From Bugula neritina (Eukaryota > Animalia > Bryozoa): a stretch of 60,193 bases of DNA. Where the stretch lies: assembly GCA_964035545.1 (NCBI GenBank), contig CAXIUT010000257.1, forward strand, positions 1-60,193. The letters run 5' to 3'. A program made the position numbers and the translations under genes. The notes beneath the pieces are model-generated. The model was not told where the DNA came from. It saw only the letters and a program-made list of their open reading frames with translations, and searched no databases. Below, piece by piece: positions 4,247 to 59,079 of the stretch; within the stretch, counting starts at the first letter, position 1; every line of letters begins with the position of its first letter.

Positions 4247-4258
4247 TAAACCGTCCTC

Positions 4259-5095: not shown

Positions 5096-5099
5096 GGCG

Positions 5100-25395: not shown

Positions 25396-28300
25396 TTATT
25401 TTTCCGCCTCGTACCAATAAGCAATTTTCTTCAGATATTCGCGTGCTGAATTGCTGACGCGCGAGACCCCTAAGTGACGCGCAAGGTCTCCAATCTGATC
25501 ATCCGAAGTTGATAAATCATTTCCGATCTGATCAAGTACAAAAGCGATTTCTGTCCGCGAAACATCTTGAATTGATCGCTCAGCAAGACCGCGAAATGGA
25601 CTCCTTGTTTGGATGGTGCCCGCAGCCCAAACGAAAGGAACCCCAAACTCTTCATGCAACTCTGCATCATCCATCGCACGCTCGACGCGCTCCATGATGC
25701 GACGGCCTGTGCGCTGCCATCCGTGACGGTTTGCAACCTCTCTTCCAAGATTGCGGAGGGGAATTGGCGCTTCTTCTTGGATGATTTCCTGAACCAGCTG
25801 CCTGAGTTCACCTATGTATGATAGATCATAAAACCGGTCTGGGTCCGGCGTTGTAGCCGGTGCGACGTTTGCCGTAGGCTTGGAGCTGTGTGCTCCATCC
25901 ACGAACAGGCTGGTTTGTTCGTCATTTTCTACTGGATCATGCTCAAGTTGGAGAACTGTCTGTTCAACTTTTTCGACCGTTGGAGGCGGTAAAGCACGCG
26001 GCTCGCTTGGTATGTCCAACGGCTCTTCAACAGTTTCTGCTTCCTTTGCCGCTTTTTCGGCTCGATTCTGTTCAAGAAGCGCTTCAAGTGCTTCATTGAG
26101 ACGTTCGACAACTGCGGGAGGATTTCGGAACCAATCGGTCGACCAGATCCGTAGTATGTTCCACCCCAAGTTCTCAAGGACGGCCTGACGAACTTTGTCT
26201 CGATCGCGTGCGGTGGCAGAACTGTGGTAGGTCGCGCCATCACATTCAATCCCTGCCAAGTAAGCGCCTGCGCGGTCTGGGTTTACAATTCCCAAGTCAA
26301 TCCGGAAGCCGGAGACACCGATTTGAGTTCTGACCTCCCAACCTTTTGCGCGGAATGCAGTAGCGATCGCTTCTTCAAATGGGTTCTCTGCTGGACCGAG
26401 TGATCCCTCGTCTCGGGCCGGAAGTGCGACTGGCCCACTTTCAGCGTAATGGAGGAAGGTTTTCAGGTCACGGACACCAGTCGCGCGGGTTCGTGACAGA
26501 TCTATTTGATCATGTGTCAAAGATGCGAAAACGTGCAGTTCGCTTCGCGCACGAGTGATTGCAACGTTTAAGCGTTTTTCGCCTCCATCCGAGTTGAGTG
26601 CGCCAAAGTTCATTGTGAGCTTACCCGCCATATCCGGGGCAAAAGTGATGGAAAAGAGCATGACATCGCGTTCATCACCTTGGATGTTTTCGAGGTTTTT
26701 TACGATGACGGGTTCTTCACGTTCATCTGCGAAGAACCATTCAAGTTCCGTATTTTGTCTCCGCACTTGATCAAGAAGATCAAGGATCAGCCCTTGCTGT
26801 TGGGCGTTAAATGTAATGACGCCAATCGTTAGTCGATCTTCTTCTGGCAGTTTGATCCAAGCGGTCAATCGCTTGCGGATCAGCGCTACGATTGCCTTTG
26901 CTTCATCGACATTGGTGCGACCGGTCCCGCGCGCATAAGTGCCGTCTATTTTGTGAAACTGGACTGCTTCACTGTCAGTGGTTGGTGCAGGAAAAGTGAC
27001 CAGTCCGCCGTCATAGTAGAAGTGGTTTGAAAACGCGATAAGTGCTTCGTCTCGGCTGCGATAGTGCCAGTCCAGACGGCGTGTGGGGATGCCTGCCGTG
27101 GCAACTTCGTCAAGGATAGAAGGCATGTCACCCAAGATCCCAGTTGCGTCGTCGTCACCTTCGCCATCATCAGAGCGTCCAAAAAAGTTGGTAGGCGGGA
27201 GTTGTTTAGGATCCCCAACAATGATCGATTGCTTGCCGCGTGCGATAGCGCCTACTGCGTCCCAAGTGGTGATCTGTGACGCTTCATCAAATATCACAAC
27301 ATCAAAGGTTGCCTGACCTGCTGGCAAATATTGGGCGATAGAAAGTGGTGACATCAAGACGCAGGGCGCAAGCTTTGGAAGGGTATCACCAAGGTTTTCA
27401 AGTAAGTTACGAATTGCCATTGAGGGCCGCTGTAGTCCAAGCTGATGGCGCAAGACACCTAGTTGAGAATTGCGCGGAACGCCGTCTCGCGCTGGCAGTC
27501 GATGATGTATTCGGCGCATGACCTCAATCGGCGCAAGTCTTGCCACTTCGTCGTCTAAATCTTGGAACGCCGTGATAACGTCCTCATGTTCCCAATGTGC
27601 AAAGCGGCGTAAAGGCTCTGATGCATCCATCGCAAGAGGTAGCCACCACCGAGCATATGCGCTTCGGCACTCTCGTATAGTATCTTCCTTTAGTTCACCG
27701 GCCTCCATAGCCTCCGATAGTGCTGACAGCCCTGCAATGTCAGCGCGGGCTTTGACGTCTTTCCAGCGGGTCCAGTCCGCCAGTCTTGCACGCTCTGAAA
27801 GAGTTTGATCCACGGACTCTTGCAAGTTGCGCAAGGGCATCTCTAAAGGAATTTGACCTCCGCACTTCTCAAAGTCCGTGATAGCTGTCTGCAATTCGGC
27901 ATTTGAGGTTCGCCAATCCTCAAGGGCGCGCTGAAGTTCCCTATCGGGCCCTTCAACCAGCGCAGCGAGTGCCGCTCCAAAAGTAACCGTGTCAGAAACA
28001 TCCAATTTTATCTCGGTCGCAGCTTGTCTAAATGAGGTCGCCTGGGAAATAACTGTTTCGAGCTGATCAATTGAACGGTCTTCCCCAGCTAGCTGGGTGA
28101 CAGGTATTTGGCTTAGTAAGTCAATCTGTTTGCGTGCAGCTTCTATTGCACGCAATTCGATTTCTGGGTTTGCTTGACCTGAGGATGCGTAAGTTTGAAG
28201 GAGTTTGCGAACCTTCCCCTTTTTCACCGAGGAAAATGGCCAAGTGGAGACCTTGGCAGCACGCCAGTCAGCGTCCAATTGCCCAAAGGGCAATCCTATT

Positions 28301-31272
28301 ATGCTATCTTCAGAGTAGCTTGCTTGCAGCTGGCTCTTAGCTTGGTTGAGCGCTTTGCAGGCCGTGGTGAAACGGTCCAGTTCGACATTCAGTTCGCTCT
28401 TTGACAGCTGAGGTACCAACTTCAAATTTTTCGCGTCATCGTTGGCGCGTTGTGCCAAAGCAGTTAGATTTTGCAGACGCTCGGGTGATGTTGCATTTTC
28501 AGGTCTAAGGCCAAGTTTATTGCCAAGATCGGCGGCTGATCTGCTCGCCCTCTCGATTGCGACACGCAAGCTTTTTGCGTGATCGATGATCTGTTCTTCC
28601 CATGCAAAGGACCATTCAGCTTGACCAACTAGAAGCAAGGTGGGTCCGTCGCCAACGGCTTTATAGGTCTGCCCTAATTCTTCGGCCATATTGAGAATGG
28701 CCTCAAAACTTAGCTGATCGTGTGCGTCCTTGTCTTCGAATTGAAGTAGTAGTCCTTTTGGTTTTGCAGCAGTCCATGAAACAGCGTCATAAACAGAAAA
28801 TCCCTGCGTCCCCTTAGTATGCACGGCTTCAACATAGGTATTTAGCTGATCGCGCTTGATGCGAAGCTTATCCGTTATGGCAATCCACTCGCTTTCGCTT
28901 GCAGCTGATGCTCTGTCCCAGCCCCGACCAAGTTGGGTCAAAACGCGTTTGCGGTCAGTCTTGTTTGAATGAAGTTCCAATACTGCGTCACCCAAGCCAT
29001 GCGACACTAGACGACGTTGAACAACATCTAGTGCAGCTGCCTTTTCGGCTACGAAGAGAACTGTCTTGCCATGAGCAATGCACTGGCAAATGATATTCGC
29101 AATCGTTTGACTTTTGCCAGTGCCTGGCGGGCCGATCAGAACGAAGTCTTGTCCTTCCGCCGCAGCAACGACGGCTGCCAATTGTGAACTATCGGCAGGT
29201 AGTGGCGTTACCAAGTCTTTTGGTGCAACGCGCCGATCAATTTCATAGGGCGCTATCGGCGACCCTGTACCAGCTTCAAATGTCTTTTCAGGGTTGTCGA
29301 CTAAATGTGCGACAAGGCGGTTGTTACGCAACTGATCAGTCCGGTCGACCAGGTCTTTCCACATTAGGAACTTAGAGAAAGAAAATGTCGAAAGCGATAT
29401 TTCCTCCACAACCTCAAAACCAGGAATGTCGCGAACACGCGACCTCATCCACTCGAATACCTGTGGCACATCGATCCCGCTTTCGTCTCGCGGAAGCTCA
29501 CCCTCTAATTCGGGGAGAATTAAATCGAAGTCGCGTTTTAAAAACTCCAAAAGAGTAGAGTTAAAGCGGACTTCATCCTCGTGATGGGTGATTTTGAACT
29601 CGGACCTCGCAGATTTGCGTTCAAGTTTAATCGGGACCAGCAACAAAGGAGCTCGGTAACTTTTCTTGTCGCCGTCTCTTTGCCAGCGCAGAAACCCTGC
29701 CGCGAGAAAGAGCGTGTTAGTCCCACCTTCTTGAACGTCACTTTTTGCTTTGCGGTACAAGGACAGCAGCCGGTTTTCAGTGTCCTTCTTGACCAGAGGA
29801 ACAGTTATTTGCCCACGTCTAAATGCATCATCGACCGCGCTTTGAATAATCGCATCTTTGTCGGCCTGTGCTAGCTGGCGCTCTCCAATAGGGTCGTCTT
29901 CCATCAAGGGATAAGCTTTGAAAGGCTTCTCTGCGGCAAGTGCGTCCTCAAGGTCAGCAAGATTAGGCACCATGCATGGCACCGTCTGCTTAGTTTGCTT
30001 GAAATTCAAAAGACGATTGCGCAGCGATAGATCAAGTAATTTAGCTTGCCAACGGTCGATCCGTCCTTTCGGTGTATCTGGCACAACATCAACAAGTTCC
30101 GTTGGAAGAAGACCAAATTCGATTGGTGATGGCAGCTTGGCTGGGGCGGCTTCAATATGCTCAGCTTCGCCAGTGTCGTTACTTGCATGGCTTGCCAAAG
30201 GTCGGATACGTGCTGAGCGTGCGCGTGTTATGTCAATCGCCATACGGAATTCGTGCTCACGCTCTTCAGCAAGACGACTATGTCCAGCTTCAACAGCCTG
30301 TTCGAATCCGACAGTCGGACGTTGTGTCAACAAAGTCGTCTCAACCGGGATGAATTCTTTCGCTTGGGATGCTTTGCGGACCGTAACAACATCCGGTTCC
30401 GTCACTTGACCAAAATCACGCTTCGTAATCCAAACACCGGCCCACGCATGCCCTTCACTAAATAGAATTACGGGGTTCAGCCCAGCCTGTTCCCACGCAG
30501 CGGCCAGCAACAATGAACTATCCAGGCAAGTGGCTAGACCTTCGCTGCGTATCCGTGCAGGAGACCGAACTTTCTGCCCATCGATTTCAAAGGACGCGGG
30601 AGGATTGGCATATGTCAAACCCATGCCAGTCATTGCTGACCAAATCGCTCCAGCGATCATCCATGCGCGCTGCGGGTTATTTGACTGGTAACCTTCCAAG
30701 GAGCCGTCATGACCGCTTTGCTCAAGAAGCAGCGAAGCTTCCTTAAGAATTGATGCGACAACTGAGTCGTTGGGCGAGACAAACGCGGCAAGCAAACGAT
30801 CCATGTCGCCAAGTCCACCCCACTGGTCTCGGGCAAGGAGCTCTAGCGTTCGAACTTCAACTAAAAGAGCACCATGTGCATGCGTAACCGAAACCGAAAG
30901 AGACCCAAACTCTGTTTCGTTGAGGCCGGACAAGTGCTGGATGTCGAGCGGTGTTGATAGGTCGTTGAGGCTTAAGCTCTGATCGGCTTCTAACCGATCA
31001 ATCTTCCAAGTTTTTGTTCTGAACACTGCGGGGTTAGCAGATAGTGTAACATCTATTTCTGTGAGTGCGTGTTCTCCGGTGTTGGTCAATGAGAGGGATC
31101 TGACAACGGGCACGTCATTTTGAGCTGATGCAAAGTTCACTCTGCTCGAAGTATTAAGTTCTATTACAATGTCATATTCGGCTTTTGCTTCCTGAATCCC
31201 TTCAGACACAACACCTTCCAAGTCACCAATTGCGTTACCTGCAGTGTGCTGACCGTCAGAAGTCTCATCCAT
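25396..31272 (-). CDS. DUF4011/DUF3320-type SF1 helicase with Vsr-like nuclease; Hhe-type anti-phage candidate (likely start 31272)
   Basis: LLDLSLRNRLLNF; GPPGTGKS; FDEASQ; GDPKQLPP; WHYRS; NIQGDERD; RLNVAITRAR; RIDLG...IECDGATYHS...GWNILRIWSTDW. Confidence 0.88.
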   Translation of the reverse strand: MDETSDGQHTAGNAIGDLEGVVSEGIQEAKAEYDIVIELNTSSRVNFASAQNDVPVVRSLSLTNTGEHALTEIDVTLSANPAVFRTKTWKIDRLEADQSLSLNDLSTPLDIQHLSGLNETEFGSLSVSVTHAHGALLVEVRTLELLARDQWGGLGDMDRLLAAFVSPNDSVVASILKEASLLLEQSGHDGSLEGYQSNNPQRAWMIAGAIWSAMTGMGLTYANPPASFEIDGQKVRSPARIRSEGLATCLDSSLLLAAAWEQAGLNPVILFSEGHAWAGVWITKRDFGQVTEPDVVTVRKASQAKEFIPVETTLLTQRPTVGFEQAVEAGHSRLAEEREHEFRMAIDITRARSARIRPLASHASNDTGEAEHIEAAPAKLPSPIEFGLLPTELVDVVPDTPKGRIDRWQAKLLDLSLRNRLLNFKQTKQTVPCMVPNLADLEDALAAEKPFKAYPLMEDDPIGERQLAQADKDAIIQSAVDDAFRRGQITVPLVKKDTENRLLSLYRKAKSDVQEGGTNTLFLAAGFLRWQRDGDKKSYRAPLLLVPIKLERKSARSEFKITHHEDEVRFNSTLLEFLKRDFDLILPELEGELPRDESGIDVPQVFEWMRSRVRDIPGFEVVEEISLSTFSFSKFLMWKDLVDRTDQLRNNRLVAHLVDNPEKTFEAGTGSPIAPYEIDRRVAPKDLVTPLPADSSQLAAVVAAAEGQDFVLIGPPGTGKSQTIANIICQCIAHGKTVLFVAEKAAALDVVQRRLVSHGLGDAVLELHSNKTDRKRVLTQLGRGWDRASAASESEWIAITDKLRIKRDQLNTYVEAVHTKGTQGFSVYDAVSWTAAKPKGLLLQFEDKDAHDQLSFEAILNMAEELGQTYKAVGDGPTLLLVGQAEWSFAWEEQIIDHAKSLRVAIERASRSAADLGNKLGLRPENATSPERLQNLTALAQRANDDAKNLKLVPQLSKSELNVELDRFTTACKALNQAKSQLQASYSEDSIIGLPFGQLDADWRAAKVSTWPFSSVKKGKVRKLLQTYASSGQANPEIELRAIEAARKQIDLLSQIPVTQLAGEDRSIDQLETVISQATSFRQAATEIKLDVSDTVTFGAALAALVEGPDRELQRALEDWRTSNAELQTAITDFEKCGGQIPLEMPLRNLQESVDQTLSERARLADWTRWKDVKARADIAGLSALSEAMEAGELKEDTIRECRSAYARWWLPLAMDASEPLRRFAHWEHEDVITAFQDLDDEVARLAPIEVMRRIHHRLPARDGVPRNSQLGVLRHQLGLQRPSMAIRNLLENLGDTLPKLAPCVLMSPLSIAQYLPAGQATFDVVIFDEASQITTWDAVGAIARGKQSIIVGDPKQLPPTNFFGRSDDGEGDDDATGILGDMPSILDEVATAGIPTRRLDWHYRSRDEALIAFSNHFYYDGGLVTFPAPTTDSEAVQFHKIDGTYARGTGRTNVDEAKAIVALIRKRLTAWIKLPEEDRLTIGVITFNAQQQGLILDLLDQVRRQNTELEWFFADEREEPVIVKNLENIQGDERDVMLFSITFAPDMAGKLTMNFGALNSDGGEKRLNVAITRARSELHVFASLTHDQIDLSRTRATGVRDLKTFLHYAESGPVALPARDEGSLGPAENPFEEAIATAFRAKGWEVRTQIGVSGFRIDLGIVNPDRAGAYLAGIECDGATYHSSATARDRDKVRQAVLENLGWNILRIWSTDWFRNPPAVVERLNEALEALLEQNRAEKAAKEAETVEEPLDIPSEPRALPPPTVEKVEQTVLQLEHDPVENDEQTSLFVDGAHSSKPTANVAPATTPDPDRFYDLSYIGELRQLVQEIIQEEAPIPLRNLGREVANRHGWQRTGRRIMERVERAMDDAELHEEFGVPFVWAAGTIQTRSPFRGLAERSIQDVSRTEIAFVLDQIGNDLSTSDDQIGDLARHLGVSRVSNSAREYLKKIAYWYEAEK

Positions 31273-31444
31273 CTTTAATCTCCACAGCGGGAAATGAGCT
31301 TCCCAAAACGCTAATTTTTCAACGATTTCATGATGTCCGCCGGAAGCGGTGAAAGGCAAGACGCAATATGTCCTGCCAAGTAGATTTACCTATGATGGCG
31401 AGCAAAGTAGCTAATCCTAAATCCATTTTAGCCGTTAATACGTC

Positions 31445-31560: not shown

Positions 31561-32496
31561 TCACCGAAACATCCCCACGGGCGATCCGTCTGCATAGCGC
31601 CATGCCGTTGCAAAATCTTTCTTTAGCTCGTCGAGATGCGCAAAAAACAATCCGGGCAGCACCTCTTCAAACACAGGGCTTTGGCGAACCTGTTTTTGCA
31701 CGGATCTCATGATGGCGGGATCGGTATAAACCGAGAGGACAAACGGCGCGCTCTTGGTAGGGTAGTTTGGGAATTTTTCCTTAATCGCGGTTGAAGCAGC
31801 AAAGTTCCGATAAAGCTGATCGATAACAAGTTCGGTGACGCTCTCGTTATGCAGCTCAACCACAAAAAGCCTGGGCGTGTCTTTGATGGTCAGCCCCAAG
31901 AAGCCATCGGGCTTGGCTTGGAGCTGGCCGCGCTCATTCCAAGTCACCATATTGATCGATACAGGACGACCACGTTTTTCGGGGCGGTTCGGATCGCCTT
32001 GGTAGTCGTGGGTAAACAAATCTATGGCTGCACCGGAATGCTGGACCCATTGGCGCAATGAGATGTGGAAATCCACATAAGCGCGGCGATGAAAGTACTC
32101 GTTGGTGAGCGTGGTTTTTTCTTTCGGGATCCAGATTTTATCGAACTGTAGTTCGCCGACGTTGCTTATAAATTCATCTTCAAACGCATGATACAATCGA
32201 TCGAGGCCCGTCTGCGTCAGATAATACATGTAGTGATGTTTGCTGGGGCGTTCGCCTGGGGCAAACTTGCCATTGCGCAGGCTGAGGCAGAAATATGCGT
32301 TCTTGCGCTTTCCGGGCGCGATTTTTTCTTCACCGGTTTTGGCATCCACAGTGGGCGCTAAGTAGGGCAGAGCGTGGTTTTCCAGACTTGCAACGGACTT
32401 TGCCAGGCCTAGGCCCACCATCTGCGGTTTGGTCAGGTAGTGGTAATGACACAGAGCCCTCATGATGCTTAAGGCGGCTGGGGGGAGATGGATCAT
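31561..32496 (-). CDS. Replication-relaxation (Replic_Relax / MOB_C-like) protein
   Basis: wHTH-like N-terminus (YHYLTKPQM, YYLTQTG); HRRAYVDF; KPDG...FVVELH restriction-like core. Confidence 0.7.
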   Translation of the reverse strand: MIHLPPAALSIMRALCHYHYLTKPQMVGLGLAKSVASLENHALPYLAPTVDAKTGEEKIAPGKRKNAYFCLSLRNGKFAPGERPSKHHYMYYLTQTGLDRLYHAFEDEFISNVGELQFDKIWIPKEKTTLTNEYFHRRAYVDFHISLRQWVQHSGAAIDLFTHDYQGDPNRPEKRGRPVSINMVTWNERGQLQAKPDGFLGLTIKDTPRLFVVELHNESVTELVIDQLYRNFAASTAIKEKFPNYPTKSAPFVLSVYTDPAIMRSVQKQVRQSPVFEEVLPGLFFAHLDELKKDFATAWRYADGSPVGMFR

Positions 32497-32497
32497 T

Positions 32498-34462
32498 TCA
32501 CTCGTACCCTGCGCCTGGATCTAATGCGGTCTTGTTCTGAATCGCAGCTTGGATGCTAGATTTGCTGGTTGGATGCTCTGCTTTACCCACTGTTTGGCGC
32601 GCGGCGGTGTCAGAGTGGCGCTGCCCCAGATCTGATGTTGGGCAGTAGTAACTCTCCAACTGCTGCTGCTTGGTGATCTCCCATTCAGCGTCCGTCATAT
32701 ACCGAGCGGCGTTCTGCTCGCGCCACTTAGCGCCCTTGAACAACAAATCGGTCCCCACTTGAAACTGGCGCGGCAAGATTGGCGGCGCATCTTCAGCGCC
32801 GCGTGAGCGCAGATAGAAATTACCAACGGTTTGGTTTTGCAAAATCGTAGTTTCATCCAAGTCTTTTGACTTACCGGTAAGATCGAATGCCGCGTTCATG
32901 GCCTCCAGATTTTTGCCAGCGCAAAAGCCCGCGATCTGCACGCCCAAGCCTTTGACAGCCTCTAAGGTCTTGCTCGGGAATTGTTCGGTGTACTGCGTGG
33001 CGAGTGTCAGGTTGAAGCCGAACTTGCGCAGCTCATTGATCTGCTTGGCGGTCTCTAAAGTCACGAGATGCTGAGCTTCATCGATGAACACATGCACCGG
33101 GTGCTGGCCGGAGGATTGACCAAACTTACGTTTCAGGATGGCCATGGTGATCTGGGCCATGAGCAGTTGGCCGATCATGCGGGTGACTGGTTCGGTGAGA
33201 TCTTTGAACGGCAGGTTGATGATTATCACCTTACGCTGTTCCAGCAATTTGCCGACGTTAAAGGTGGGTGGGTTGAGCAACATGCGCTGCAGCACTGGCG
33301 ATGTGATGATGCGCTCTAAGCGCCCAAACAGCGCGTTCTTGGCCATGCCGTAATTGCCATGCATGAAGATGTTTTGAAAATGCTCGCGGATGATTGGGTT
33401 GGGAGAATTGTGGCAGGCATCCTCATATATCTGTGGATAGGGCTTGGCTGGTTTGTCGCGTTTGGGAGGTTCGACGCTGAGCAAATCCATAAGATCTTTG
33501 AGATTATAGTTGTCGTTTTCTAAGATCACATGCGCGCAGTTCTGGCAGATGGTTTCCATGTTGCCGGTGCCGGTGGGATCTGCCGTGCCTGAGATGGCGC
33601 GCAGGGCCTCACCGTATAGCGTCGCTTCCACAAACAGGTTGTCGCTGGATTTGTCATCGGTATTCAAAAGATTGGGGCAGGGGGTAAATGCGGGATCAAG
33701 CGTGGGGTCGATATAGACCAAGCGATCGGTGCCATAGAGCGGCTTCATCCGAGCGATCTCAGGGGCCATTTCGCCGTGAGGGTCAATCACAATGATCGTT
33801 TCGCGCAGGTCGGGTTTATTGAGATAGTGCCACACGCGCTGCTTGATAACTTCTGATTTTCCAGAGCCGTGATTGCCAACAATGAACGTGCCAAACTCTG
33901 CCGCAGCTTCAGGGATCGGCAGGCTGCGGTTTTTACTGAGAAAGGCTGTCAGAGGTGAAACAGGCGAGGGGGGTGCTTGGACCTCGTCTTGGCCTTCAGG
34001 GGTTTGCACCAGCTGGGAGATTTCAGCGTCGGCGTAACTGAGATAGTTTCCTAACCCATAGCCGAAGTATCGCCGGATATGATCGATCTTTGCGGCTTCG
34101 CCTTGATGAGCCAGCAGCGCGGTCTCATAAATTCTTAAGGCTTGGTGGTAGCGATAGGATTTGGCGATCTCGCGCTCTTCTGGTGCGTCGTAGATAATGT
34201 GTGCTGGATCAAAGACGGGATCATCAATGTGAGGCGCGATGAGTTTGATGTCCTTGGCATTCAGGCGCTTTTGCAGCTGATCAAATGACATGAACGCGCC
34301 GGTGTAACTTGCGGCGTCACTGACGACATCGACTGCTAGCTTGAGAGCGTTTTGCAACGTCCATGTACCAACCACACCGTCATTGGCGTTGAGGGGCGCG
34401 CCGTCCGAGGTGATGGGTAGGCCATCAACCTTGTGCAGGGCTTTCTCTAGAATGGGCTGCAT
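32498..34462 (-). CDS. Second coupling-protein-like ATPase (TraD/TrwB/HerA-like), no obvious TM anchor
   Basis: GNHGSGKS, VIDPHGE, VFIDEAQH, ELRKFGFNLTLATQY. Confidence 0.85.
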   Translation of the reverse strand: MQPILEKALHKVDGLPITSDGAPLNANDGVVGTWTLQNALKLAVDVVSDAASYTGAFMSFDQLQKRLNAKDIKLIAPHIDDPVFDPAHIIYDAPEEREIAKSYRYHQALRIYETALLAHQGEAAKIDHIRRYFGYGLGNYLSYADAEISQLVQTPEGQDEVQAPPSPVSPLTAFLSKNRSLPIPEAAAEFGTFIVGNHGSGKSEVIKQRVWHYLNKPDLRETIIVIDPHGEMAPEIARMKPLYGTDRLVYIDPTLDPAFTPCPNLLNTDDKSSDNLFVEATLYGEALRAISGTADPTGTGNMETICQNCAHVILENDNYNLKDLMDLLSVEPPKRDKPAKPYPQIYEDACHNSPNPIIREHFQNIFMHGNYGMAKNALFGRLERIITSPVLQRMLLNPPTFNVGKLLEQRKVIIINLPFKDLTEPVTRMIGQLLMAQITMAILKRKFGQSSGQHPVHVFIDEAQHLVTLETAKQINELRKFGFNLTLATQYTEQFPSKTLEAVKGLGVQIAGFCAGKNLEAMNAAFDLTGKSKDLDETTILQNQTVGNFYLRSRGAEDAPPILPRQFQVGTDLLFKGAKWREQNAARYMTDAEWEITKQQQLESYYCPTSDLGQRHSDTAARQTVGKAEHPTSKSSIQAAIQNKTALDPGAGYE

Positions 34463-34879
34463 ATTTGATCCCTTGGAATGCTATCGGTAACCCACTGATT
34501 AAGCTGAAACAGTGCCTTGGGTTTTTCCTTAGTTTAGGGCTTGGTTTCGACATTCGGCAAGCAGGGATTTTGGCCTGCAAGAACAACGACATAGGTAGAT
34601 TCCATAACTTAACTTCCAACCTCACTTGGTCTCTTTCTCTCTTTCGTCATCCTGAGCGTCTTCCTCTCTCGCTCGCTCACCCTTCATATAATCCGGTTGT
34701 GACCGCCCGCGCTCCGATGGATTGTTTTTCTATCAAAGCGTTCCCCCCTTCCAGCCATGCAATCAAGCCGATCACTCCAGTTTCCAATTCAATGAACTGG
34801 CCGGACAAAATTCAGCTGAATAAAATGAACAAAAATTCAAACGAAAAACTGGGCAAAGAAGAACTGTTCGGTAGAAACG

Positions 34880-36112
34880 CTAGAGCGGGAAATGTTTGCG
34901 CAGCAAATTGATCCGCATATCCAGCTGATCAACAGCGCGCAGCTTTTCTTCCGCTGCCATCATCTCTCGGATCAGCTTTCGGCGCTTGCCAGACAGCTGC
35001 GCACTAAGGCGATCAAGCAGGCCCATCCGATCGAATGTGGTGCGGTGTTTGGTGATAGTGGATTTGAGTTTGCGCCGGGCTTTCTTGTTGTTTTGCACGA
35101 CCCCGTCCCAGCCGGATTTGTGGGCTGTGGAGAGAAGGTGAGCGGCTTCTGCGCGCCAATCTTTCAGCGTGGTAAAACTTGCCTGGCCGAACTCTTCTGC
35201 CTGAAGGGTCTTGGTTAGCTTTTGCGGCACGCTTGACCAGAAGTAGAGCTGTAGTGATAAAGCCAATCTTTCGGTTGGCGTCGCGGCGCGTGCAAGTGCG
35301 TTGACCAACAGGCGTTTGGTGGATTGATGGCTGGCATCCAATTGCGATTGAAGTTGATGATGCAGCTCGGGGCGCTCGTCGGCCAAAGCGTCCAGATAGG
35401 CTAGGCTCATGGCTTGGCGTGTGTGTTCCCATAACTTGGTCTTGTTGATCTGGTGGCGCTTGTTCTGGCTCTTGCGCGAGGCGGTGACGGTATAGGAGCC
35501 ATCACGATTGCGGCGCATCCCATCTGGGTGACCATACTTAATTTCGACATCTGGCATGGCAGCTGGATTGATCTGCATGGCTTTCAGGCGCTCGCCAAAC
35601 CGGGCGTGTGTTTTTTGGAGGGATGTTTCGCTGACGCTGTGATCTTTGAGCGTGCTTGGAAATTTTAGAGCTTTTGCAAACGGGCGCAAAGTGGGCGTCA
35701 GTGTACCTGTAGTGATAAAATTACTTTTGCTTGGCGCGCTTTGCTTACTGGATTTAATGTCCATTGGCTCTGGCCTGTTAGTCGCATCAACAGATTTGGG
35801 GCGCGGCTCTTGTTCAAGCGGTTTAGCCTCGAGTGGGGCAGAGGCTTCTGTTTGGATCTGCGGTGTACTGGTGGCGGTGCCGATGATGTTCGTGCTTGCG
35901 GCGCGCACTGATGTGACGAGCGCGGCCATGTCGGCTTGTCCAAGTTGTTCGCGGGTGGCCCTGACTTGCTGCGCCACGGCAGGTTCCACAGCGCCTAGGT
36001 ACTCAATCGTTCGCGTGCGAACGCGGCCACCCTCGCGATAGCTTTCCTGCATATAGCCGTAGTATCGACCATGTACCTTTTTGATCGCTAAGTAGGGTAC
36101 CTGAGACCTCAC
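34880..36112 (-). CDS. Basic hypothetical protein with an N-terminal beta-sheet DNA-binding-like domain
   Basis: KKVHGRYYGYMQESYREGGRVRTRTIEYLG; 410 aa; GTG start. Confidence 0.75.
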   Translation of the reverse strand: MRSQVPYLAIKKVHGRYYGYMQESYREGGRVRTRTIEYLGAVEPAVAQQVRATREQLGQADMAALVTSVRAASTNIIGTATSTPQIQTEASAPLEAKPLEQEPRPKSVDATNRPEPMDIKSSKQSAPSKSNFITTGTLTPTLRPFAKALKFPSTLKDHSVSETSLQKTHARFGERLKAMQINPAAMPDVEIKYGHPDGMRRNRDGSYTVTASRKSQNKRHQINKTKLWEHTRQAMSLAYLDALADERPELHHQLQSQLDASHQSTKRLLVNALARAATPTERLALSLQLYFWSSVPQKLTKTLQAEEFGQASFTTLKDWRAEAAHLLSTAHKSGWDGVVQNNKKARRKLKSTITKHRTTFDRMGLLDRLSAQLSGKRRKLIREMMAAEEKLRAVDQLDMRINLLRKHFPL

Positions 36113-36173
36113 AGTTTTTTATGCTTACCTGTAGTGATAAAATCAATTTGACGATGCGTCTAGGGTTCCTACG

Positions 36174-36530
36174 ATGAGGAAGATGATATCCACGTTTCAG
36201 CGAATTGACCGCACTGAGCGTTCGATAGGGGAGCGGGCGAAGCGGTGTTTCCAGGAGGGAGAGTTCGTGGACAGAGTTGCGCGCAAAATCTGGTTGGATG
36301 ACGTGCATGAATTCTTGCGCTGGCTGGCTATGCAGACAAACTCGCTTGATGAGGGCGCGTGGACGGTTGATCGATCCCGGCAATATGTATTGCACCTACA
36401 ACGCTACCAGCCGCGCCAACGGGCAGCTCGCAAGTGGCAAGCCGTGGTGCACCTGGCCGATTGGAGCCACGAAGCTATACCGTTTAGAACGGAAACCCCC
36501 ACTGAAGGCGTAGTGATAACTCGCATCTAA
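36174..36530 (+). CDS. Stand-alone integrase core-binding (SAM-like) domain protein
   Basis: DDVHEFLRWL...RQYVLHLQ...AARKWQAV pattern; no catalytic domain. Confidence 0.45.
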   Translation: MRKMISTFQRIDRTERSIGERAKRCFQEGEFVDRVARKIWLDDVHEFLRWLAMQTNSLDEGAWTVDRSRQYVLHLQRYQPRQRAARKWQAVVHLADWSHEAIPFRTETPTEGVVITRI

Positions 36531-38125
36531 AGTGCCTTTATCGGCCGATCATCATCGGGTGAAAGCGCTATTGAATTCCACTCAATGCCGTAGTCATCTT
36601 GCTCGAGGGTAACAGTGTGGCCAAGCTTTTTGAGATACTTGGGAATGTCCCGTTCGTAAAAACTCAGTACCCGTCGCTGGCCGTCGCTAAGATTTTCTGG
36701 TTCATATGGATTATGCTCGTTCACTGTGTGCCAGTAGGTTTGATCTGAATTGGATTGTATGATTGCTGTGTCGCCATGTGGCGTATCCACAGCCACGTGG
36801 AACTGTCCTTGCTCACGAGTGGCTCGCTCTGCCCAATCGCTTGCAGTGGGATATTCGTCATCAAAGTATGTTTCTGCCAAATCAGATAGGTCTTCAGTAG
36901 TCGGCACATTGGTGCCTTCCCAACCATAGCTTTCTGGATCTGATGGCAGAACTTCTGTTGCGAAATGGCTGATCTCTGAGCTGCGAATTTCAGACCAGTT
37001 GTCTCGCCGCTCAATATCATAAGTGTTCAACAACAGCACGTCATTGCCATAGACCTCAAGCACGAGAGCGTCTTCACCAAAGGTCTCGATATCTGTTCCT
37101 GGCCGGAAGTCGTCAAGGATCAAGTCATCGCTTGAGGGAGATGCAAACTGCTCGATATAGGCGGCTGTTTCAGCATTTGGGAAATGCAGCTCTGCTAATC
37201 CATCGCGCGCAGCCCGGCGGATTTCTTCCTTAAGAGTGCGCTGCCACCAGGTCTTACGGTAAGCCACCAAACGATCGAAGTCTTCCTGAGCACAGGTCGA
37301 CGTCTCCAGAAACGGATTGCCTGGCTGCAATTGAAAGTCATCGGCTGATCGGTGGCTTTGGTACAAATCAGATTGCAGCTCCAAAATGCGGCGCACGTTG
37401 GCATCTGCATCGGTTTGGCAGCGGACATGGGCAAAGTAATTTGCAGCGGCGTCCTCGCGAGAAAAATGAGCCCGACCACCGGGCGTGGGGAAGGGGGTGG
37501 CGTAAATGATTTCTGCGTAGTCAAAGTCGTAATCCTGATGTTCTTCCGGCAGTTGAAACTCGTCCCATTGAGTATGGATTTCCACAGGATTAATTGGCAG
37601 TAGTTCAAGTTCTAGTCGGCGGGCGAACAGGTCCACGGGCACCCGCTCGCCGTCGATCTCAGCCAGGATAGCTTCGATCAGCTCTTTTTCAGCGGGTTTC
37701 AAACCGGGAACGCGGGCCAAGTCTAATACGAACTGCCGCGAGATGAATGTCTTCCCCTCCAACTCATCCAGAACTGCCAGTGTTAAACTATCCGCGCCGC
37801 TGTAGGGCGGAATTGGGGGATTGGCCAACTCATATTGTACCTGAGGATCAAGATTGTCAGAACCTGGGAGAGGGCTCTGCGAGGTGAAGCGCTGATCGTA
37901 ATATGAGCCCGAAGTAGCCTGCGCATCAATTGCGCTGCGTTCCGGCGAGAACAACCCCTGTTGCACTTGGATGACATCAAGGGCCGTCGCGCGGCCAAGA
38001 TACTGCAACGTTCGGGTTCGCACCTGCCCTTTGAGCCGGTAACTTTCCTGCACATACAGGTAAGGATTCCCCTTAACCCATTTGATGACAGGGTAGCTCA
38101 CTTTAGCGGACTCCAGTTTGACCAA
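36527..38125 (-). CDS. Acidic protein with the same N-terminal domain plus an 'ELQSD' module
   Basis: KWVKGNPYLYVQESYRLKGQVRTRTLQYLG; FAHVR...RILELQSDLYQ...TWWQRTLKEEIRRAARDG...FYERDIPKYLKKLG. Confidence 0.75.
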   Translation of the reverse strand: MVKLESAKVSYPVIKWVKGNPYLYVQESYRLKGQVRTRTLQYLGRATALDVIQVQQGLFSPERSAIDAQATSGSYYDQRFTSQSPLPGSDNLDPQVQYELANPPIPPYSGADSLTLAVLDELEGKTFISRQFVLDLARVPGLKPAEKELIEAILAEIDGERVPVDLFARRLELELLPINPVEIHTQWDEFQLPEEHQDYDFDYAEIIYATPFPTPGGRAHFSREDAAANYFAHVRCQTDADANVRRILELQSDLYQSHRSADDFQLQPGNPFLETSTCAQEDFDRLVAYRKTWWQRTLKEEIRRAARDGLAELHFPNAETAAYIEQFASPSSDDLILDDFRPGTDIETFGEDALVLEVYGNDVLLLNTYDIERRDNWSEIRSSEISHFATEVLPSDPESYGWEGTNVPTTEDLSDLAETYFDDEYPTASDWAERATREQGQFHVAVDTPHGDTAIIQSNSDQTYWHTVNEHNPYEPENLSDGQRRVLSFYERDIPKYLKKLGHTVTLEQDDYGIEWNSIALSPDDDRPIKAL

Positions 38126-38171
38126 GTAGTGATAACTTTGGTATGATAGTCAAACTTCTTCACCAAAAGCT

Positions 38172-38432
38172 ATGGAATTTGATGGGCCAAAGCCGGAAAC
38201 ATCGGATGAAAAACGCACGCGGTGGGAACGTGAACGCCAGGCGTTTTGGCAAAAAGCTGAAACTCGAGATCCCGGCGATGCAAACGCCCGTTGGCTAAAA
38301 GCGGAAAGCGACAAGACTTGCGCGGCCATTGATCGTCTAACTACGGGGGCTCAAAACCCAAAGCCATATTTTGGCAGCAGGGGAGACGATGTGGTTGATT
38401 TAGAAGAGCAGCCAGACGGCTCATTCCGGTAA
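38172..38432 (+). CDS. Small hypothetical protein
   Basis: 86-aa ATG ORF, divergent from 38125, fills the gap. Confidence 0.45.
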   Translation: MEFDGPKPETSDEKRTRWERERQAFWQKAETRDPGDANARWLKAESDKTCAAIDRLTTGAQNPKPYFGSRGDDVVDLEEQPDGSFR

Positions 38433-38636
38433 TCAGAGTTTGCCTTGCCGCGTCAGTTTTTCCACGGTGGCATTGATGTGATCGCTGGAAGCCGCGCCAA
38501 ATTCTCGCACCAGCTGGATCTTTAGGCGTTCTCTGAATTCAAAGTTGCCTTTATCGTAAGCGATGTGTAGACCCCATGGTATCGGCCGCATCCGTGATGT
38601 GAGATTCTTGCCTCCAACGATTTCGGAGGGATTGTT

Positions 38637-38987
38637 ATGCTTGATAATGTTGGTGGCGGCGGTGTTCGCAAGAAGAACGTGCGCCGTTCTGCGGCGGAAC
38701 GCGCGGCGATTGTTGCTGAGAGTTATGAGCCTGGTGCGACTGTTGCGATGGTGGCGCGACGGCACGGGATTGTAGCATCGCAGCTTTCGACTTGGCGCAC
38801 GGCGGCAAAGCGCAAGAAGGAAGCGGATCACAGCCCTGCCTTTGCCGATCTATCCGTGATCCCCGAGGCGCTTCCAGCAGCGTTTGAGGGGGTCGAGATC
38901 GCGGTGGGCGCTATAACTGTCCGCCTGCCCAAGAGCACAACACCTAAACGGATTGCCGACATCGCACAACGTTTGGCACAGGCGTGA
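38637..38987 (+). CDS. tnpA: IS66 accessory protein TnpA
   Basis: IVAESYEPGATVAMVARRHGIVASQLSTWR HTH. Confidence 0.9.
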   Translation: MLDNVGGGGVRKKNVRRSAAERAAIVAESYEPGATVAMVARRHGIVASQLSTWRTAAKRKKEADHSPAFADLSVIPEALPAAFEGVEIAVGAITVRLPKSTTPKRIADIAQRLAQA

Positions 38988-39337
38988 TCTATCCCAGCCA
39001 AGCGGTTCGGATCGTGATCGCGACCAAGCCCGTAGACTTCCGCAAAGGCCACGATGGCTTGGCGGCACTGGCCGAGCGCGAACTTGGCCTTGATCCGCAT
39101 TCTGGCGTCATTGTTGTGTTCCGCGCCAAACGCGGCGACCGGATTAAGGTGTTGCTTTGGGACGGCTCTGGCCTGGTGCTGTGCTACAAGCGGTTGGAAC
39201 AGGGCAAGTTCGCTTGGCCGAAAGTGCAGGATGGCATGATACGGCTGACGAAGGCGCAGTTTGAGGCTTTGTTTGAAGGTTTAGATTGGCGGCGTGTGAT
39301 GGCGAAGCGGACCCGCCGCCCGGGTGCGACAGAGTGA
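38984..39337 (+). CDS. tnpB: IS66 accessory protein TnpB
   Basis: PVDFRKGHDGL...KVLLWDGSGLVLCYKRLEQGKF. Confidence 0.95.
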   Translation: MIYPSQAVRIVIATKPVDFRKGHDGLAALAERELGLDPHSGVIVVFRAKRGDRIKVLLWDGSGLVLCYKRLEQGKFAWPKVQDGMIRLTKAQFEALFEGLDWRRVMAKRTRRPGATE

Positions 39338-39396
39338 ATCGACACGCCAGATGTGGGACGGAATGCCGTGCAAACATAGTGCTATTTTGGTAAGTA

Positions 39397-40998
39397 TTGC
39401 TTATGTTTGACGCGCTTAAAAACCTTGATCTGGAGGCCCTTCCTGCGGAGGTGCGAGAAGTCGTTTTGGGTCTTGGTCAACGGAATGCAGAACTGGAAGA
39501 GCGCACCGCCGCCCTCGCAGCCCAAAACGCCGAGCTTGAGGCGCTGAACGCGCGGTTGGAGCACTTTGTCAAAGAACTGAACCATGTAATTTACGGCGCG
39601 CGCAGTGAGAAGCTGACGGAAGATGAACGCCAGTTGGCGTTCGAGGACATTGAGGTCGCCCAATCCGAAGCGGAAGAGCAGGCAGACACCATCGAGATGA
39701 CCACGCCGCGCAAGAAGCGCAAGCCTGTGCAGCGCAACCTTGGCAACCTGCCTGATCACCTGGAACGGATTGAACAGATCATTGAGCCCGACAGTATCGT
39801 CTGTCCCTGCGGATGTGGGGATATGGTGCGTATCGGTGAAGATATCACCGAGCGACTAGAGATTGTCCCCGCGCAGCCAAAGGTCATTGTGGCCATCCGC
39901 CCCAAGTACGCCTGCCCAAGCAAGCAGGGTGGTGTGGTGCAGGCCTTGGCCCCTGTACATCTGATCGAGGGTGGGCTGCCAACAGAAGGCACACTGGCCC
40001 ATGTCAGCGTGTCCAAATATGCGGATCACTGCCCGCTGTTCCGTCAATCCCAGATATATGCCAGATCAGGCCTCAACATTGATCGCTCCACGCTGGCCAA
40101 CTGGATGGGCAAGGTGTCCTTCCATCTCGCCCCAGTGGTGGATCACATGTTCAAAGAACTGAAGAGATCAGACAAACTCTTTGCAGATGAGACGCGCTGT
40201 CCGGTGCTGGACCCCGGACGTGGCAAAACCAAAACAGGCTATCTCTGGGCCATTGCCCGCGATGAGCGCCCTTTCGGCGGCACGGCTCCACCTGGTGTGG
40301 TCTTCTGCTACGCAGATGGACGCGGCGGCAAACATGCGACAGACTTCTTAACGGGCTTTAGCGGTACGCTGCAAGTTGACGGCTATACGGGCTATAATGC
40401 CCTGACCAAGCCGGGGCGCAATTCTGGCCCCGTCAAACTGGCGTATTGCTGGGCGCACGCGCGACGCAAGCTTAAGGAAGTGCATGACCGCGATGGATCG
40501 CCCGTCGCCAAAGAAGGGCTCAAACGCATTGCCAAGTTCTATAAGATCGAAGACGCCATCAGGGGGCAATCCGCTGAACAGCGTAAGGCCGCGCGCCAAG
40601 AGCAAACCAAACCGTTGATCGAGGACTTCGAGGTCTGGCTCAAAACAACCCGCGCCCGCATCTCCGCAAAATCACGGCTTGGTGAGAAGCTCAGCTACAT
40701 CGCCAAATACATGGATGGGCTAAAGCTGTTCCTTGATGATGGCACCGTCGAGATGGACAGCAACGTGGTCGAGCGTGCGATCCGCCCGATTGCCCTTAAT
40801 CGCAAGAACGCGTTATTTGCGGGTCATGATGAGGGCGGTCGCACATGGGCGCGCATCGCCTCCCTGATCGAGACCTGCAAGCTCAATGTCGTCGAACCAT
40901 ACGCGTATCTCAAGGCAACCTTGGAGGCCATTGCGGTAGGCCATCCGGCAGCTCGCATCGATGAACTCATGCCGTGGAACTTTGACAACGTGGGCTGA
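39397..40998 (+). CDS. tnpC: IS66 DDE transposase TnpC
   Basis: GARSEK, CPCGC, ADET, QVDGY, CWAHARRK, SNVVERAIR. Confidence 0.95.
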   Translation: MLMFDALKNLDLEALPAEVREVVLGLGQRNAELEERTAALAAQNAELEALNARLEHFVKELNHVIYGARSEKLTEDERQLAFEDIEVAQSEAEEQADTIEMTTPRKKRKPVQRNLGNLPDHLERIEQIIEPDSIVCPCGCGDMVRIGEDITERLEIVPAQPKVIVAIRPKYACPSKQGGVVQALAPVHLIEGGLPTEGTLAHVSVSKYADHCPLFRQSQIYARSGLNIDRSTLANWMGKVSFHLAPVVDHMFKELKRSDKLFADETRCPVLDPGRGKTKTGYLWAIARDERPFGGTAPPGVVFCYADGRGGKHATDFLTGFSGTLQVDGYTGYNALTKPGRNSGPVKLAYCWAHARRKLKEVHDRDGSPVAKEGLKRIAKFYKIEDAIRGQSAEQRKAARQEQTKPLIEDFEVWLKTTRARISAKSRLGEKLSYIAKYMDGLKLFLDDGTVEMDSNVVERAIRPIALNRKNALFAGHDEGGRTWARIASLIETCKLNVVEPYAYLKATLEAIAVGHPAARIDELMPWNFDNVG

Positions 40999-41540
40999 TA
41001 CCGCTTACTGTGCGGGCAGACCGGACGGTTACGCCGATACCATGGGGTCTACACATCGCTTACCCTTTATCGAGGTGATCAACCAGTTCCAGCCTTTTGC
41101 GTTCCTCAGCCAAAGTAACCAGCTCATGGCTTTGCTCACTGGTCTTAGCGTCCATCGCGTGCTGGTGATCGAGAATTGATTGCTCGGCTGTTATGCGCGC
41201 GGCCACAACCAACTCGATAATGCGGGTTTCCAGGCGCACAACTTCTTTGTCGATATCCCAAAAATGGCGAAAGAAATCGTCCTGCTGTTTGATTGAGGTC
41301 TGGATAGCTTCAAGCCGGACTTGCTGAGCGTTCTTGAATTCTTGAAACTTCAGATCAAGGGCGCGGTTTTCCTTATCAAGATCGTGATGAAGTAGTGATA
41401 ACTCTCGCTCGTTGTCCCCGCGAAGCTTTTCGATCTCAACGTCAAATTCTTCTGAGGTAATTCGATCCTGGCGGCGCAGGTCCGATTGCAGCCGGATTTG
41501 ATTTTCCCGTTGGCGTCCACGAGCTTCGATTTCCCATGCG

Positions 41541-41918
41541 TCAGCCATCAGTTTTGCCCAGCAGCGGTGTTTGTTGATCTGCTTTGGTGAGGCGTTGCGA
41601 AATATCGGCCCTAAAGCGTTCCATCAGATCTGTTTGCTGTTCATAGCCAGAGGAGACGGTTTTCTGCATGGTTTCGCTCATCTCCAATAGTTCAGATGTG
41701 CGTTGTTGCATTTGCCCTTCGAGTGCTGCGAACTTTGTCTGCAATGCCTCAAATTCAGCCAGAGCATCCCCAAAACTAGCTTCAATGCCGTTAAGTTTGC
41801 CGTGCAGAGCTTGGTTTTCCGCAAGGACGGCTTCGTACATGCGTTTGTAATCGGCTTGTTCTTGCTGATCGCGAAAGCGGTCACTGTCCCGCTCGTCTGA
41901 GGTGCGAAAATCTACCAA
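41541..41918 (-). CDS. Coiled-coil hypothetical protein
   Basis: Heptad-rich; tightly coupled to both neighbours. Confidence 0.7.
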   Translation of the reverse strand: MVDFRTSDERDSDRFRDQQEQADYKRMYEAVLAENQALHGKLNGIEASFGDALAEFEALQTKFAALEGQMQQRTSELLEMSETMQKTVSSGYEQQTDLMERFRADISQRLTKADQQTPLLGKTDG

Positions 41919-43147
41919 GTCAAATATCCAATCTCTCTAAAAGATGTTCTTTTCGTCTGAGAGTATCAAATATGCGCCGCCCTTCCATAGAGTCTTGCGG
42001 ATTGTCAATGTCGCCAGCTTCGTTTCGTATGTTATAGATCGCGGTGAGAATGCTTTCGGGGCGCTCACTTGTGGCTTTGGGAAGTTCGTATGTTTCGACG
42101 ATCTTAACCAGTGAGCGGTGTAGCTGTCGGGTTTCCTGAAACTTTCGCCACATGTCACGAGGTTCACGCGCTAATGTTGTTGTGAGCTTGTTGAACGCGC
42201 CAAAAAAACCTGTCTTGCCTTTGTTACGATCCTTTGCAGCCAGAAATTCTTCGGTCTGTTCAATGAAATGAATGCTGTAATTTGCTTTAAGATTAAGTGT
42301 CGAGCCATCAAATGCACGGTGGGCGGTCAAAATTTCGTCGGCTTCAAAGGTTGAAATGCGATACGTTTGGCAGATTTTTTCAAGGATGCCGTCCTCGCCA
42401 GTTACGAACACATCATTTGGGGATGTGTCGTAGTCGCCGCCATGTTCCGGAGCAGGGCTATCTTCGGTTTCGCGGTACTGTGAAAAATCAACATCTGGTT
42501 TTAGCACTGCGGGCACCGACATTACACTAGGGCCAGCTGAGGGAAAAGAGCTCTGGGCATTCACTAAACCCTCTTCTTGTTCCTCATGAGAAAAACGAAT
42601 ATTCTTGAAATAACTATCAGACATGTTCTCAACTAATTGTTCTACAGGAATTTTGACAAAATCTAAATCATCAAGAGAATTTATTTCTGCGAACAATACT
42701 CGAAAAACGGCCTCATGAAGGCCGAGGGATTTTTCTAGAGCAAATACTGATTTGTACATGATGGACGAGGTATAAAAACCATTTATACAGCACAGATGAG
42801 CGCAAGCGCCTAAAAATTTTTCGTCTACAAGGCCATCATGAAATGGTGCGTCGAATTTGTACAAATACTGCTTTTGCTCTTCTTTTAGCCCAATCAACGG
42901 TAGGTGAACAGATTTAGAACTTGCTGCACCGTCAATGGTTTCTTGCCCGCACTGTTCGTTATATTTCGGAAATGGGTGATGAGGTCGCTTTGAAAAATAA
43001 TAAACGGAATTCGTGTGGGAAATCAGCCCGTTCCACAGATCATTACACTCCTCGACCATTCTGTCTCCTTCGGAACTAGAGAAAGTCATGGGCATTGGTA
43101 AGCAAGCATCTTGAATATAACGCAGGTCGTATTTTATTTCCTCTAGC

Positions 43148-59067: not shown

Positions 59068-59079
59068 TAAACCGTCCTC

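Follow-up and report, generated by a model that had tools for sequence, protein, structure and literature searches.

A portable N-terminal domain and its candidate DNA site in the mobilisation region of a marine bacterial plasmid

Relaxosome accessory proteins, such as TraM and TraY of F, MobC of RA3 and TrwA of R388, are ribbon-helix-helix proteins that bind at several places close to the origin of transfer and regulate their own expression; they join a small DNA-binding module to an oligomerisation domain, are encoded next to the coupling-protein and relaxase genes and have sites at their own promoters (PMC12857230). The MOB_C relaxases, with which CONJscan equates the Pfam family PF13814 (Replic_Relax; PMC5357655), are PD-(D/E)XK enzymes for which no covalent relaxase-DNA intermediate has been observed and DNA recruitment is unexplained; TraX of pAD1 binds five direct repeats located 70-120 bp from nic (PMC12857230). 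Here we describe a locus of related make-up on a contig of the Bugula neritina assembly GCA_964035545.1 (CAXIUT010000257.1, 60,193 nt, analysed at full length and called the window below). In it, the 10-nt word GTAGTGATAA recurs in and around two genes whose products, of 532 and 410 amino acids (aa), share an N-terminal segment that we call the tag, beside genes for a coupling-protein-like ATPase and a MOB_C-type relaxase homologue. The sequence of the window is that of one circular bacterial plasmid (54,821 bp), read beyond its own start: its first 200 nt reappear at position 54822. Positions 1-5372 and 54822-60193 are the same sequence, and whole-window statistics therefore count the features of this part twice. 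The plasmid bearing word and module is marine bacterial; it is contig C266 of an assembly of 216 Mb from a eukaryote with bacterial contigs.

Transfer modules in which a DNA-binding accessory protein occurs together with its sites are known as a kind. No description was found of the domain, of its portability or of the dual-coded, co-varying sites, and a literature search with the motif strings returned only unrelated primers. The 410-aa protein resembles relaxosome accessory proteins in combining a small, putatively DNA-binding module with a candidate oligomerisation domain, in the place of its gene next to those of the coupling protein and the relaxase, and in a site at its own promoter. It differs from those ribbon-helix-helix proteins in a predicted β3-α rather than β-α-α topology without a Pfam model, and also in that its sites are single asymmetric 11-mers hundreds of bp apart, two of them inside the gene, and that the tag occurs also on unrelated effectors. 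As in the MOB_C systems (pAD1 TraX, CloDF13 MobC/MobB), a Replic_Relax or PD-(D/E)XK relaxase homologue is accompanied by its own coupling protein, and in pAD1 direct repeats are part of the recognition of the origin of transfer (oriT). Unlike the present locus, however, neither pAD1 nor CloDF13 has been described with a tag-domain protein or a dispersed 11-mer array.

An oriented DNA word in and upstream of tag genes

Six exact copies of GTAGTGATAA were found in the window, all on the plus strand, at 35251, 35709, 36131, 36510, 38126 and 41392, the same positions as in a preliminary description made from the sequence alone. The count expected by shuffling is 0.03, and none of 100 shuffles reached six. 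When the IS66-family insertion is left out, the six copies fall within about 3.6 kb; their spacing ranges from 379 to 1616 bp and their flanks are unrelated. The near-matches noticed earlier at 32230 and 32437 are present, with two and one mismatches, respectively, and 32437 (+) and a further copy at 48812 (-) are the only one-mismatch copies in the window. On both strands of the 216-Mb assembly there are 777 copies, about one per 280 kb, which makes the local density here about 500-fold higher. The region is transcribed leftward, and in the sense direction the motif reads TTATCACTAC, with TTAACACTAC in some lineages. The sites and the two tag genes are as follows.

41392..41401, minus strand: site copy inside the p162 gene, past the IS66 element; specific to the window, as the p162 homologues of loci L010 and L001 lack it
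38126..38135, minus strand: site copy upstream of the 532-aa gene, abutting the TTG at 38125
36527..38125, minus strand: gene of the 532-aa protein, tag domain and uncharacterised body
36510..36519, minus strand: site copy after the 532-aa gene, 7 nt beyond the stop codon
36131..36140, minus strand: site copy upstream of the 410-aa gene, putative operator, 18 nt before the GTG at 36112
34880..36112, minus strand: gene of the 410-aa protein, with tag domain (about residues 5-78), disordered linker (73-140) and a C-domain of about 260 aa
35879..36112, minus strand: tag-domain coding region of the 410-aa gene (predicted local distance difference test, pLDDT, 83.5; 672 representatives)
35709..35718, minus strand: site copy 1 inside the 410-aa gene, encoding F132-I133-T134-T135 in frame 1, at the junction of disordered linker and C-domain
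35251..35260, minus strand: site copy 2 inside the 410-aa gene, sense TTATCACTAC, encoding L285-S286-L287-Q288 in frame 2

The distances to the start codons at 38125 and 36112 are those noted before, though GTG at 38101 is the likelier start of the 532-aa gene, because GGAG precedes it and the domain profile begins there. Counted from the end of the 11-nt site, this start lies 23 nt away. On the opposite strand, sigma-70-like promoter matches overlap or abut two sites (38118-38147 and 36148-36175, plus strand); one of them scores 10/12 with an extended -10, and both point towards small plus-strand open reading frames (ORFs). The ORF at 36174-36530 (+) had been labelled integrase-CB-like, a label that found no confirmation in either Pfam or PDB-sequence matches.

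Residues 1-50 of the 410-aa protein, used in a region-restricted word search, gave 15 homologues. From the contigs of several of these, and from scans of genome and metagenome contigs, 18 non-redundant related loci were compiled (252 kb in total; Rhodobacterales, Caulobacterales and unassigned metagenomes; GC 35-56%), cited below by L numbers where they have to be told apart. Enrichment of the motif near homologues had been named beforehand as a test of the idea of cognate sites; the loci hold 54 sense copies and no antisense copy, with about one expected, and the motif accompanies tag genes in all of them. By information content the site reads gTTA(T/A)CACTACa in coding-strand sense, between unconserved flanks; in this comparison the 10-mer is the core of an oriented site of 11-12 nt.

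Position is also conserved. Where a gap precedes a tag gene, there is in most cases a copy 13-57 nt ahead of the start codon, most often at about 40 nt. In L025 and L027, where the tag gene is tightly coupled to its upstream neighbour, the copy is found ahead of the operon's first gene, at a distance of 29 nt. The CACTACA core persists 13-20 nt before the ATG of even very distant tag genes whose C-terminal parts differ (L031, L033/34); in L034 this is the sole CACTACA on either strand of 12 kb, and the Replic_Relax gene lies 4 kb off on the other strand. The tag-ArdC gene of L001 has a copy 18 nt before its start and further ones at +210 and +664, between its domains; in L001 this gene stands upstream of a member of the 410-aa family, an order that mirrors the 532-aa tag gene before the 410-aa gene in the window. 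Between further copies the distance is mostly 380-500 bp, in the unrelated ArdC gene as well, and some loci have an extra copy in, or just upstream of, the ATPase gene. Taken together, the positions support a link of the site to tag genes rather than to those of the relaxase or the ATPase.

The two copies inside the 410-aa gene are a case of dual coding. Every homologue of this protein has two in-gene copies, 446-506 nt apart and read in two different frames. When the codons of 11 homologues were aligned (38-60% aa identity, GC 45-56%, mean third-position identity 0.46), the two sites were the only invariant runs of at least 6 nt, their wobble positions included. Copy 1, read as x-I-T-T, forms a conserved island within an otherwise unconserved, disordered linker. 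In another frame, copy 2 gives L-S-L-Q/H; it is an 11-nt run without variation in the 11 genes, and L285, S286 and L287 are invariant in the protein alignment. With TTAAC as the DNA word, the peptides change to N-T-T and L-T-L. Because two frames are used, the runs are invariant and the peptides shift with the DNA word, the constraint, as judged from these alignments, is one on the nucleic acid, which the protein accommodates.

Several known types of repeat were considered and dropped. Plasmid iterons are ruled out by an 11-nt core with unconserved flanks at a spacing of 379-1616 bp, as against closely spaced tandem repeats of about 17-22 bp beside a rep gene; in the related loci Rep3 lies several kb away, without site copies. 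Integron-like cassettes, which would end in attC-type imperfect palindromes and come with an IntI integrase, do not fit either, as the site has no dyad and no integron integrase is among the protein matches. A DnaA box, an IHF site, anti-Shine-Dalgarno pairing and a T7-like promoter core were set aside for a poor match to the consensus or the lack of a matching enzyme.

The tag domain, its carriers and a switch shared with the site

The 532-aa and 410-aa proteins, otherwise unrelated as stated in the preliminary description, share only their first ~55 residues (BLASTP E 1e-10). In the AlphaFold model of the 410-aa tag, residues 7-13, 16-27 and 30-42 form strands and 44-73 a helix (pLDDT 83.5 for the domain in isolation). 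The shared segment is a real domain; its predicted fold is a three-stranded antiparallel sheet with a C-terminal helix, in line with the β-sheet suggested earlier. A profile search of 1.84 billion representatives retrieved 672 proteins with the domain; among the best 150 matches, only about a dozen have it start elsewhere than within the first few residues.

The domain matched nothing in Pfam (Arm-DNA-bind included), NCBIfam or PDB sequences, and scans of the 410-aa and 532-aa proteins against Pfam and NCBIfam were likewise empty. In tblastn against PLSDB (72,556 plasmids), the 410-aa and 532-aa proteins and the tag protein P0054 were unmatched and P0131 was matched only through its zeta-toxin part; the ESM Atlas returned low-score rows only. 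Foldseek placed arm-type domains of HPI and P4-like integrases, and PC4, at the top of its list, all at E of at least 0.17: 3jtz and 3rmp at E 0.17-0.28 with a TM score of 0.16, arm-type rows overall at E 0.17-1.2 and TM 0.16-0.29. VIA-align gave a best Z of 4.2, to unrelated folds. With the Arm/AP2 fold proposed before, the tag shares the predicted topology (three-stranded sheet and helix), and its membership is topological only (E 0.17, Z at most 4.2). The likeness to the arm-type domains of tyrosine integrases (lambda Int, HPI, P4-like; 3jtz, 3rmp, 3ju0) extends from the N-terminal sheet and helix to the sites, which in both cases are short (about 10 bp in the arm type), asymmetric, oriented and present in several copies. 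The lambda arm-type consensus may share a TCACTA core with them. Unlike arm-type integrases, the tag proteins have no recombinase domain.

The description as IS1634-N-like also found support. The tag profile weakly matches the extreme N-terminus of multi-copy DDE_Tnp_1 transposase ORFs of 530-590 aa (E 1e-7 to 9e-5), a similarity to transposases of the IS1634/IS4 type, and the L022 protein scores 2.7e-13 to PF01609. The window proteins differ from these in that a Pfam scan of the 410-aa and 532-aa proteins gave no DDE match. A 2,083-bp insertion sequence (IS), present in eight copies in one Rhodobacterales genome (G411, e.g. L055), encodes a 589-aa DDE transposase that begins tag-like, and its ends, as examined, contain no clear site copy.

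The claim of a portable domain was upheld: the tag is N-terminal and fused to at least five different bodies, namely the conserved domain of about 260 aa, ArdC, zeta toxin, RelA/SpoT and the 532-aa body. The ~260-aa C-domain, common to about 60 of 165 tag proteins examined, is mostly helical and ends in a coiled-coil hairpin, the only part matched in full-length fold searches. It has few invariant acidic residues in the 410-aa family (D197, E322, E388), and a more distant subfamily has neither an acidic residue nor a histidine that is invariant or close to it, which argues against an enzyme; the predicted hairpin fits an oligomerisation role. Among the other fusions, P0100 joins the tag to RelA_SpoT and P0131 to Zeta_toxin, and L001:8834-9946 is a complete ArdC (ArdcN and MPTase-PolyVal) with an N-terminal tag. 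The public gene call for the latter starts at 9323 and misses the tag and ArdcN. These fusions recall ArdC and the polyvalent proteins by which conjugative elements establish themselves; known ArdC lacks an N-terminal extension of this kind, and its binding to single-stranded DNA is non-specific (PMC7213743).

The body of the 532-aa protein has a single relative among the proteins found, and the word search found none. That relative lies within P0088, a metagenomic protein of 805 aa that combines the tag with a counterpart of the 532-aa body (32% identical over 499 aa) and with a portion of a 410-type C-domain, with ITT peptides at both junctions. The 532-aa and 410-aa genes of the window may thus be related to the split or the fusion of a P0088-like gene.

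The site occurs in two classes, T or A at position 4, and the two in-gene sites switch jointly: their peptides are I/S in 29 cases, N/T in 7, mixed in one and I/T in none. The class tracks residue 13 of the domain (V of IKK-V-KG, strand 1), which is V in 36 of 37 T-class and I in 11 of 12 A-class proteins, the class of most proteins, among them P0088, P0100, P0131 and the distant subfamily, being deduced from peptide signatures and not from DNA. Among proteins with two inferred sites the split is complete (24/24 and 7/7), whereas the single-site inferences for P0114 and P0115 are discordant. All loci verified at the DNA level agree with the pairing of V with T and I with A. In the window, two V tags go with six T sites; L021, L024, L025, L027 and the ArdC tag of L001 have I with A sites; and L001 has one tag of each type and both site types. 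In a tree built from C-terminal parts only, each trait needs five changes, and well-supported branches force at least four for the site class. This leaves four to five independent pairs, about three concordant, about one without difference and none opposite, for which a sign test is not significant (p ~0.25). As the T/A switch at position 4 tracks V/I at residue 13, direct recognition of the site by the tag is suggested; the case for such a contact is good but not conclusive. R16H was considered as the determinant of the L001 variant and rejected, since L010 has Q16 with canonical sites.

The mobilisation module and its setting

The tag genes of the window belong to a leftward gene order of p391, p125 and p162, the IS66 element, the 532-aa gene, the 410-aa gene, a non-coding gap of 417 bp, the ATPase and the 311-aa protein. 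The members not listed above are the following.

41060-43095, leftward: genes of p391, p125 and p162
41060..41918, minus strand: p162 and p125, coiled-coil genes and conserved upstream operon partners, with homologues in L001, L010, L021, L025 and L027
38556..41063, plus strand: IS66-family insertion, outside the system, which splits the site array and truncates the p162 gene
34463..34879, minus strand: purine-rich non-coding element, conserved (alignment of nine loci), in the gap between tag gene and coupling-protein gene
32498..34462, minus strand: coupling-protein-like ATPase (TrwB/HerA/TraD-type), conserved downstream of the tag gene
31561..32496, minus strand: MOB_C-type (Replic_Relax, PD-(D/E)XK) relaxase homologue of 311 aa, assigned through homologous proteins of the related loci that match PF13814

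The ATPase, of 654 aa, matches TrwB_AAD_bind, DUF87 and T4SS-DNA_transf and is conserved in related loci. The 311-aa protein has no direct Pfam match; its homology to the PF13814-matching proteins of the loci ranges from E 1e-15 to 1e-115. The order p125, p162, tag protein, ATPase and relaxase is conserved across loci, and in the plasmid loci ParA and Rep3 follow the module. In L025 the module lies within a 690-kb contig with recombinases, a setting that suggests a mobilisable island. The element at 34463-34879 reads GAGCGAGCGA...GATGA.GA.GAGGA... and continues in AT-rich blocks; it is shared as far as L013 and L025 and holds no site copy. A hairpin search of the region between tag gene and ATPase gene found none that is conserved. 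The element is a candidate for oriT or for the promoter of the ATPase gene.

The IS66 element has perfect inverted repeats of 31 nt, and 8 bp of its target, CCTTTATC, are duplicated. It interrupts the p162 homologue at the 3′ end; uninterrupted, this gene would encode about 196 aa, as does the L001 homologue. Directly downstream of the relaxase gene, a 1987-aa protein (25396-31359, minus strand) gives a full-length match to NCBIfam NF058533, anti-phage protein ProA (2095 bits, cutoff 1500). A further mobilisation pair on the plasmid, unrelated to the first, consists of a MobA/VirD2-like relaxase and a coupling protein of the VirD4 type (21363-23851, plus strand).

A possible address system and competing explanations

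From the co-occurrence, orientation, position, nucleotide-level constraint and co-variation of the sites we infer binding, repression, looping and the recruitment of cargo. On balance we consider it probable, with much room for error, that the tag is a site-specific address domain that autoregulates its operon and assembles proteins on it. The small N-terminal domain of the 410-aa and 532-aa proteins would recognise the site directly. Its commonest carrier, a conserved protein of 350-480 aa encoded just upstream of the coupling-protein-like ATPase and the MOB_C relaxase, would repress its own operon through the promoter-proximal copy as operator; the in-gene and flanking copies, mostly at the spacing given above, would be auxiliary operators. 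Oligomerising through the C-terminal coiled coil, tag proteins could bridge the copies into a looped nucleoprotein complex adjoining the likely transfer origin, and other bearers of the tag (the 532-aa protein; elsewhere ArdC, zeta toxin and RelA/SpoT) would be drawn to the same plasmid address. Such an arrangement has a parallel in the lac operators. O2 lies in lacZ, about 400 bp from O1, a spacing that favours looping, and here too a promoter-proximal site is joined by others some 400-460 bp off inside the gene. The lac operators are, however, palindromic and free in orientation, whereas the present sites are asymmetric and always co-oriented, and looping here is conjectural. Of the three uses that the preliminary description had offered for the sites, autoregulation fits best, as judged from the position of sites 13-57 nt upstream of starts; tethering of cargo by the tag is possible, and cassette recombination is the least supported.

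Several results weigh against the address reading, in addition to the few independent switches, the two discordant proteins and the peptide-based classes mentioned with the co-variation. L013/14, L021 and L024 have no copy directly upstream of the gene. The fold searches gave no significant match to any DNA-binding domain, and in the promoter scan promoter-like matches near sites occurred at chance frequency. The placement of sites at gene and domain boundaries could reflect coding tolerance, and recombination is possible there. The main loose end is the strict 54:0 orientation, which a simple operator does not need and which fits a single-strand process, on the transferred strand (T-strand) or mRNA, or a polar one equally well or better; it keeps both of these in play.

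Orientation speaks also for an explanation that we hold to be unlikely, in which the tag reads a single strand, either the T-strand in the recipient, marked every ~450 nt as incoming DNA for ArdC and others, or the operon mRNA, whose translation it would repress. The whole region is transcribed one way, and a protein bound at those copies that lie 13-23 nt from start codons would occlude the ribosome. Among the weak rows of the fold searches are proteins that bind single strands, PC4/Sub1, Pur-alpha and RPA, but these matches are not significant, and what is known of transposases makes duplex DNA ends the most likely target of the related transposase N-termini. It is the recipient, not the donor, that requires ArdC (PMC7213743), and the gap in the account of MOB_C relaxases, with no covalent intermediate observed and DNA recruitment unexplained (PMC12857230), leaves space for such a mark. 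A broader proposal, to which we likewise give only a small chance, makes the tag a plasmid-specific address label: oriented sites about 450 nt apart in the region that probably enters first would be read on the transferred strand or on the fresh duplex, and tag-bearing proteins of establishment and anti-defence (ArdC, effectors of the kinase or alarmone type, the 532-aa protein) would gather on the plasmid that is their own or be delivered along with it. The protein of tag and C-domain would then take on the DNA-piloting role, since no covalent DNA intermediate has been observed for MOB_C relaxases.

The tag could also be irrelevant, and the repeats be oriT-associated and read by a winged helix of the MOB_C relaxase, or be loading sites for the coupling-protein-like translocase, in the way that TraB of Streptomyces recognises 8-bp repeats. 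The tag gene, ATPase and relaxase are always linked, and the extra copies at the ATPase gene of some loci agree with this idea, as do the repeats that TraX binds 70-120 bp from nic (PMC12857230). We think it improbable in view of the site variant, which follows a residue of the tag domain, of copies that stand before the tag-ArdC gene and before distant tag genes, at a distance from the relaxase, of a spacing of hundreds of bp rather than of helical repeats, and of the conserved intergenic element beside the ATPase gene, which has no copy. Decidedly improbable, too, are sites that act as joints for the site-specific or recombination-prone shuffling of cassettes and domains, by which tag fusions would arise. 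Copies do stand directly after the stops of variable upstream genes (L005-L008, L015, 36510 in the window, 9933 in L001) and at domain boundaries, as between tag, ArdcN and MPTase in the tag-ArdC gene (+210 and +664); P0088 joins tag, 532-type body and 410-type C-domain with ITT at both junctions; and a resolvase gene lies 2.5-3.4 kb upstream in many loci. Yet the site is short and asymmetric, without dyad or conserved flanks, recombination between in-gene copies in different frames would destroy the gene, every homologue keeps both copies even without cargo, no recombinase is consistently present (L010, L013), and linkers and domain boundaries are the cheapest places for an imposed DNA word. 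That the repeats have no function as DNA and merely follow from protein conservation or recent duplication is scarcely credible. Two of the six copies do lie at conserved coding positions, but the coding copies use different frames, their wobble positions are invariant against the mean third-position identity of 0.46, many copies are non-coding and the flanks of the copies are unrelated; the codon alignment and the 54:0 count already contradict it.

An unannotated domain (672 clusters, no Pfam model, no PLSDB member found) is here paired with a probable DNA word, and the pair has a built-in specificity switch, V13 with T as against I13 with A. For the unexplained recruitment of DNA by MOB_C relaxases, a conserved and site-specific partner whose gene adjoins that of the coupling protein readily suggests itself. 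The locus also offers a clear example of dual coding, in which a putatively regulatory 11-nt word stays invariant in two reading frames among relatives of about 25-60% aa identity and very different GC content and imposes the peptides ITT and LSLQ on the protein. The occurrence of the tag on ArdC and toxin-type domains suggests a way in which plasmids may aim anti-defence proteins at their own DNA.

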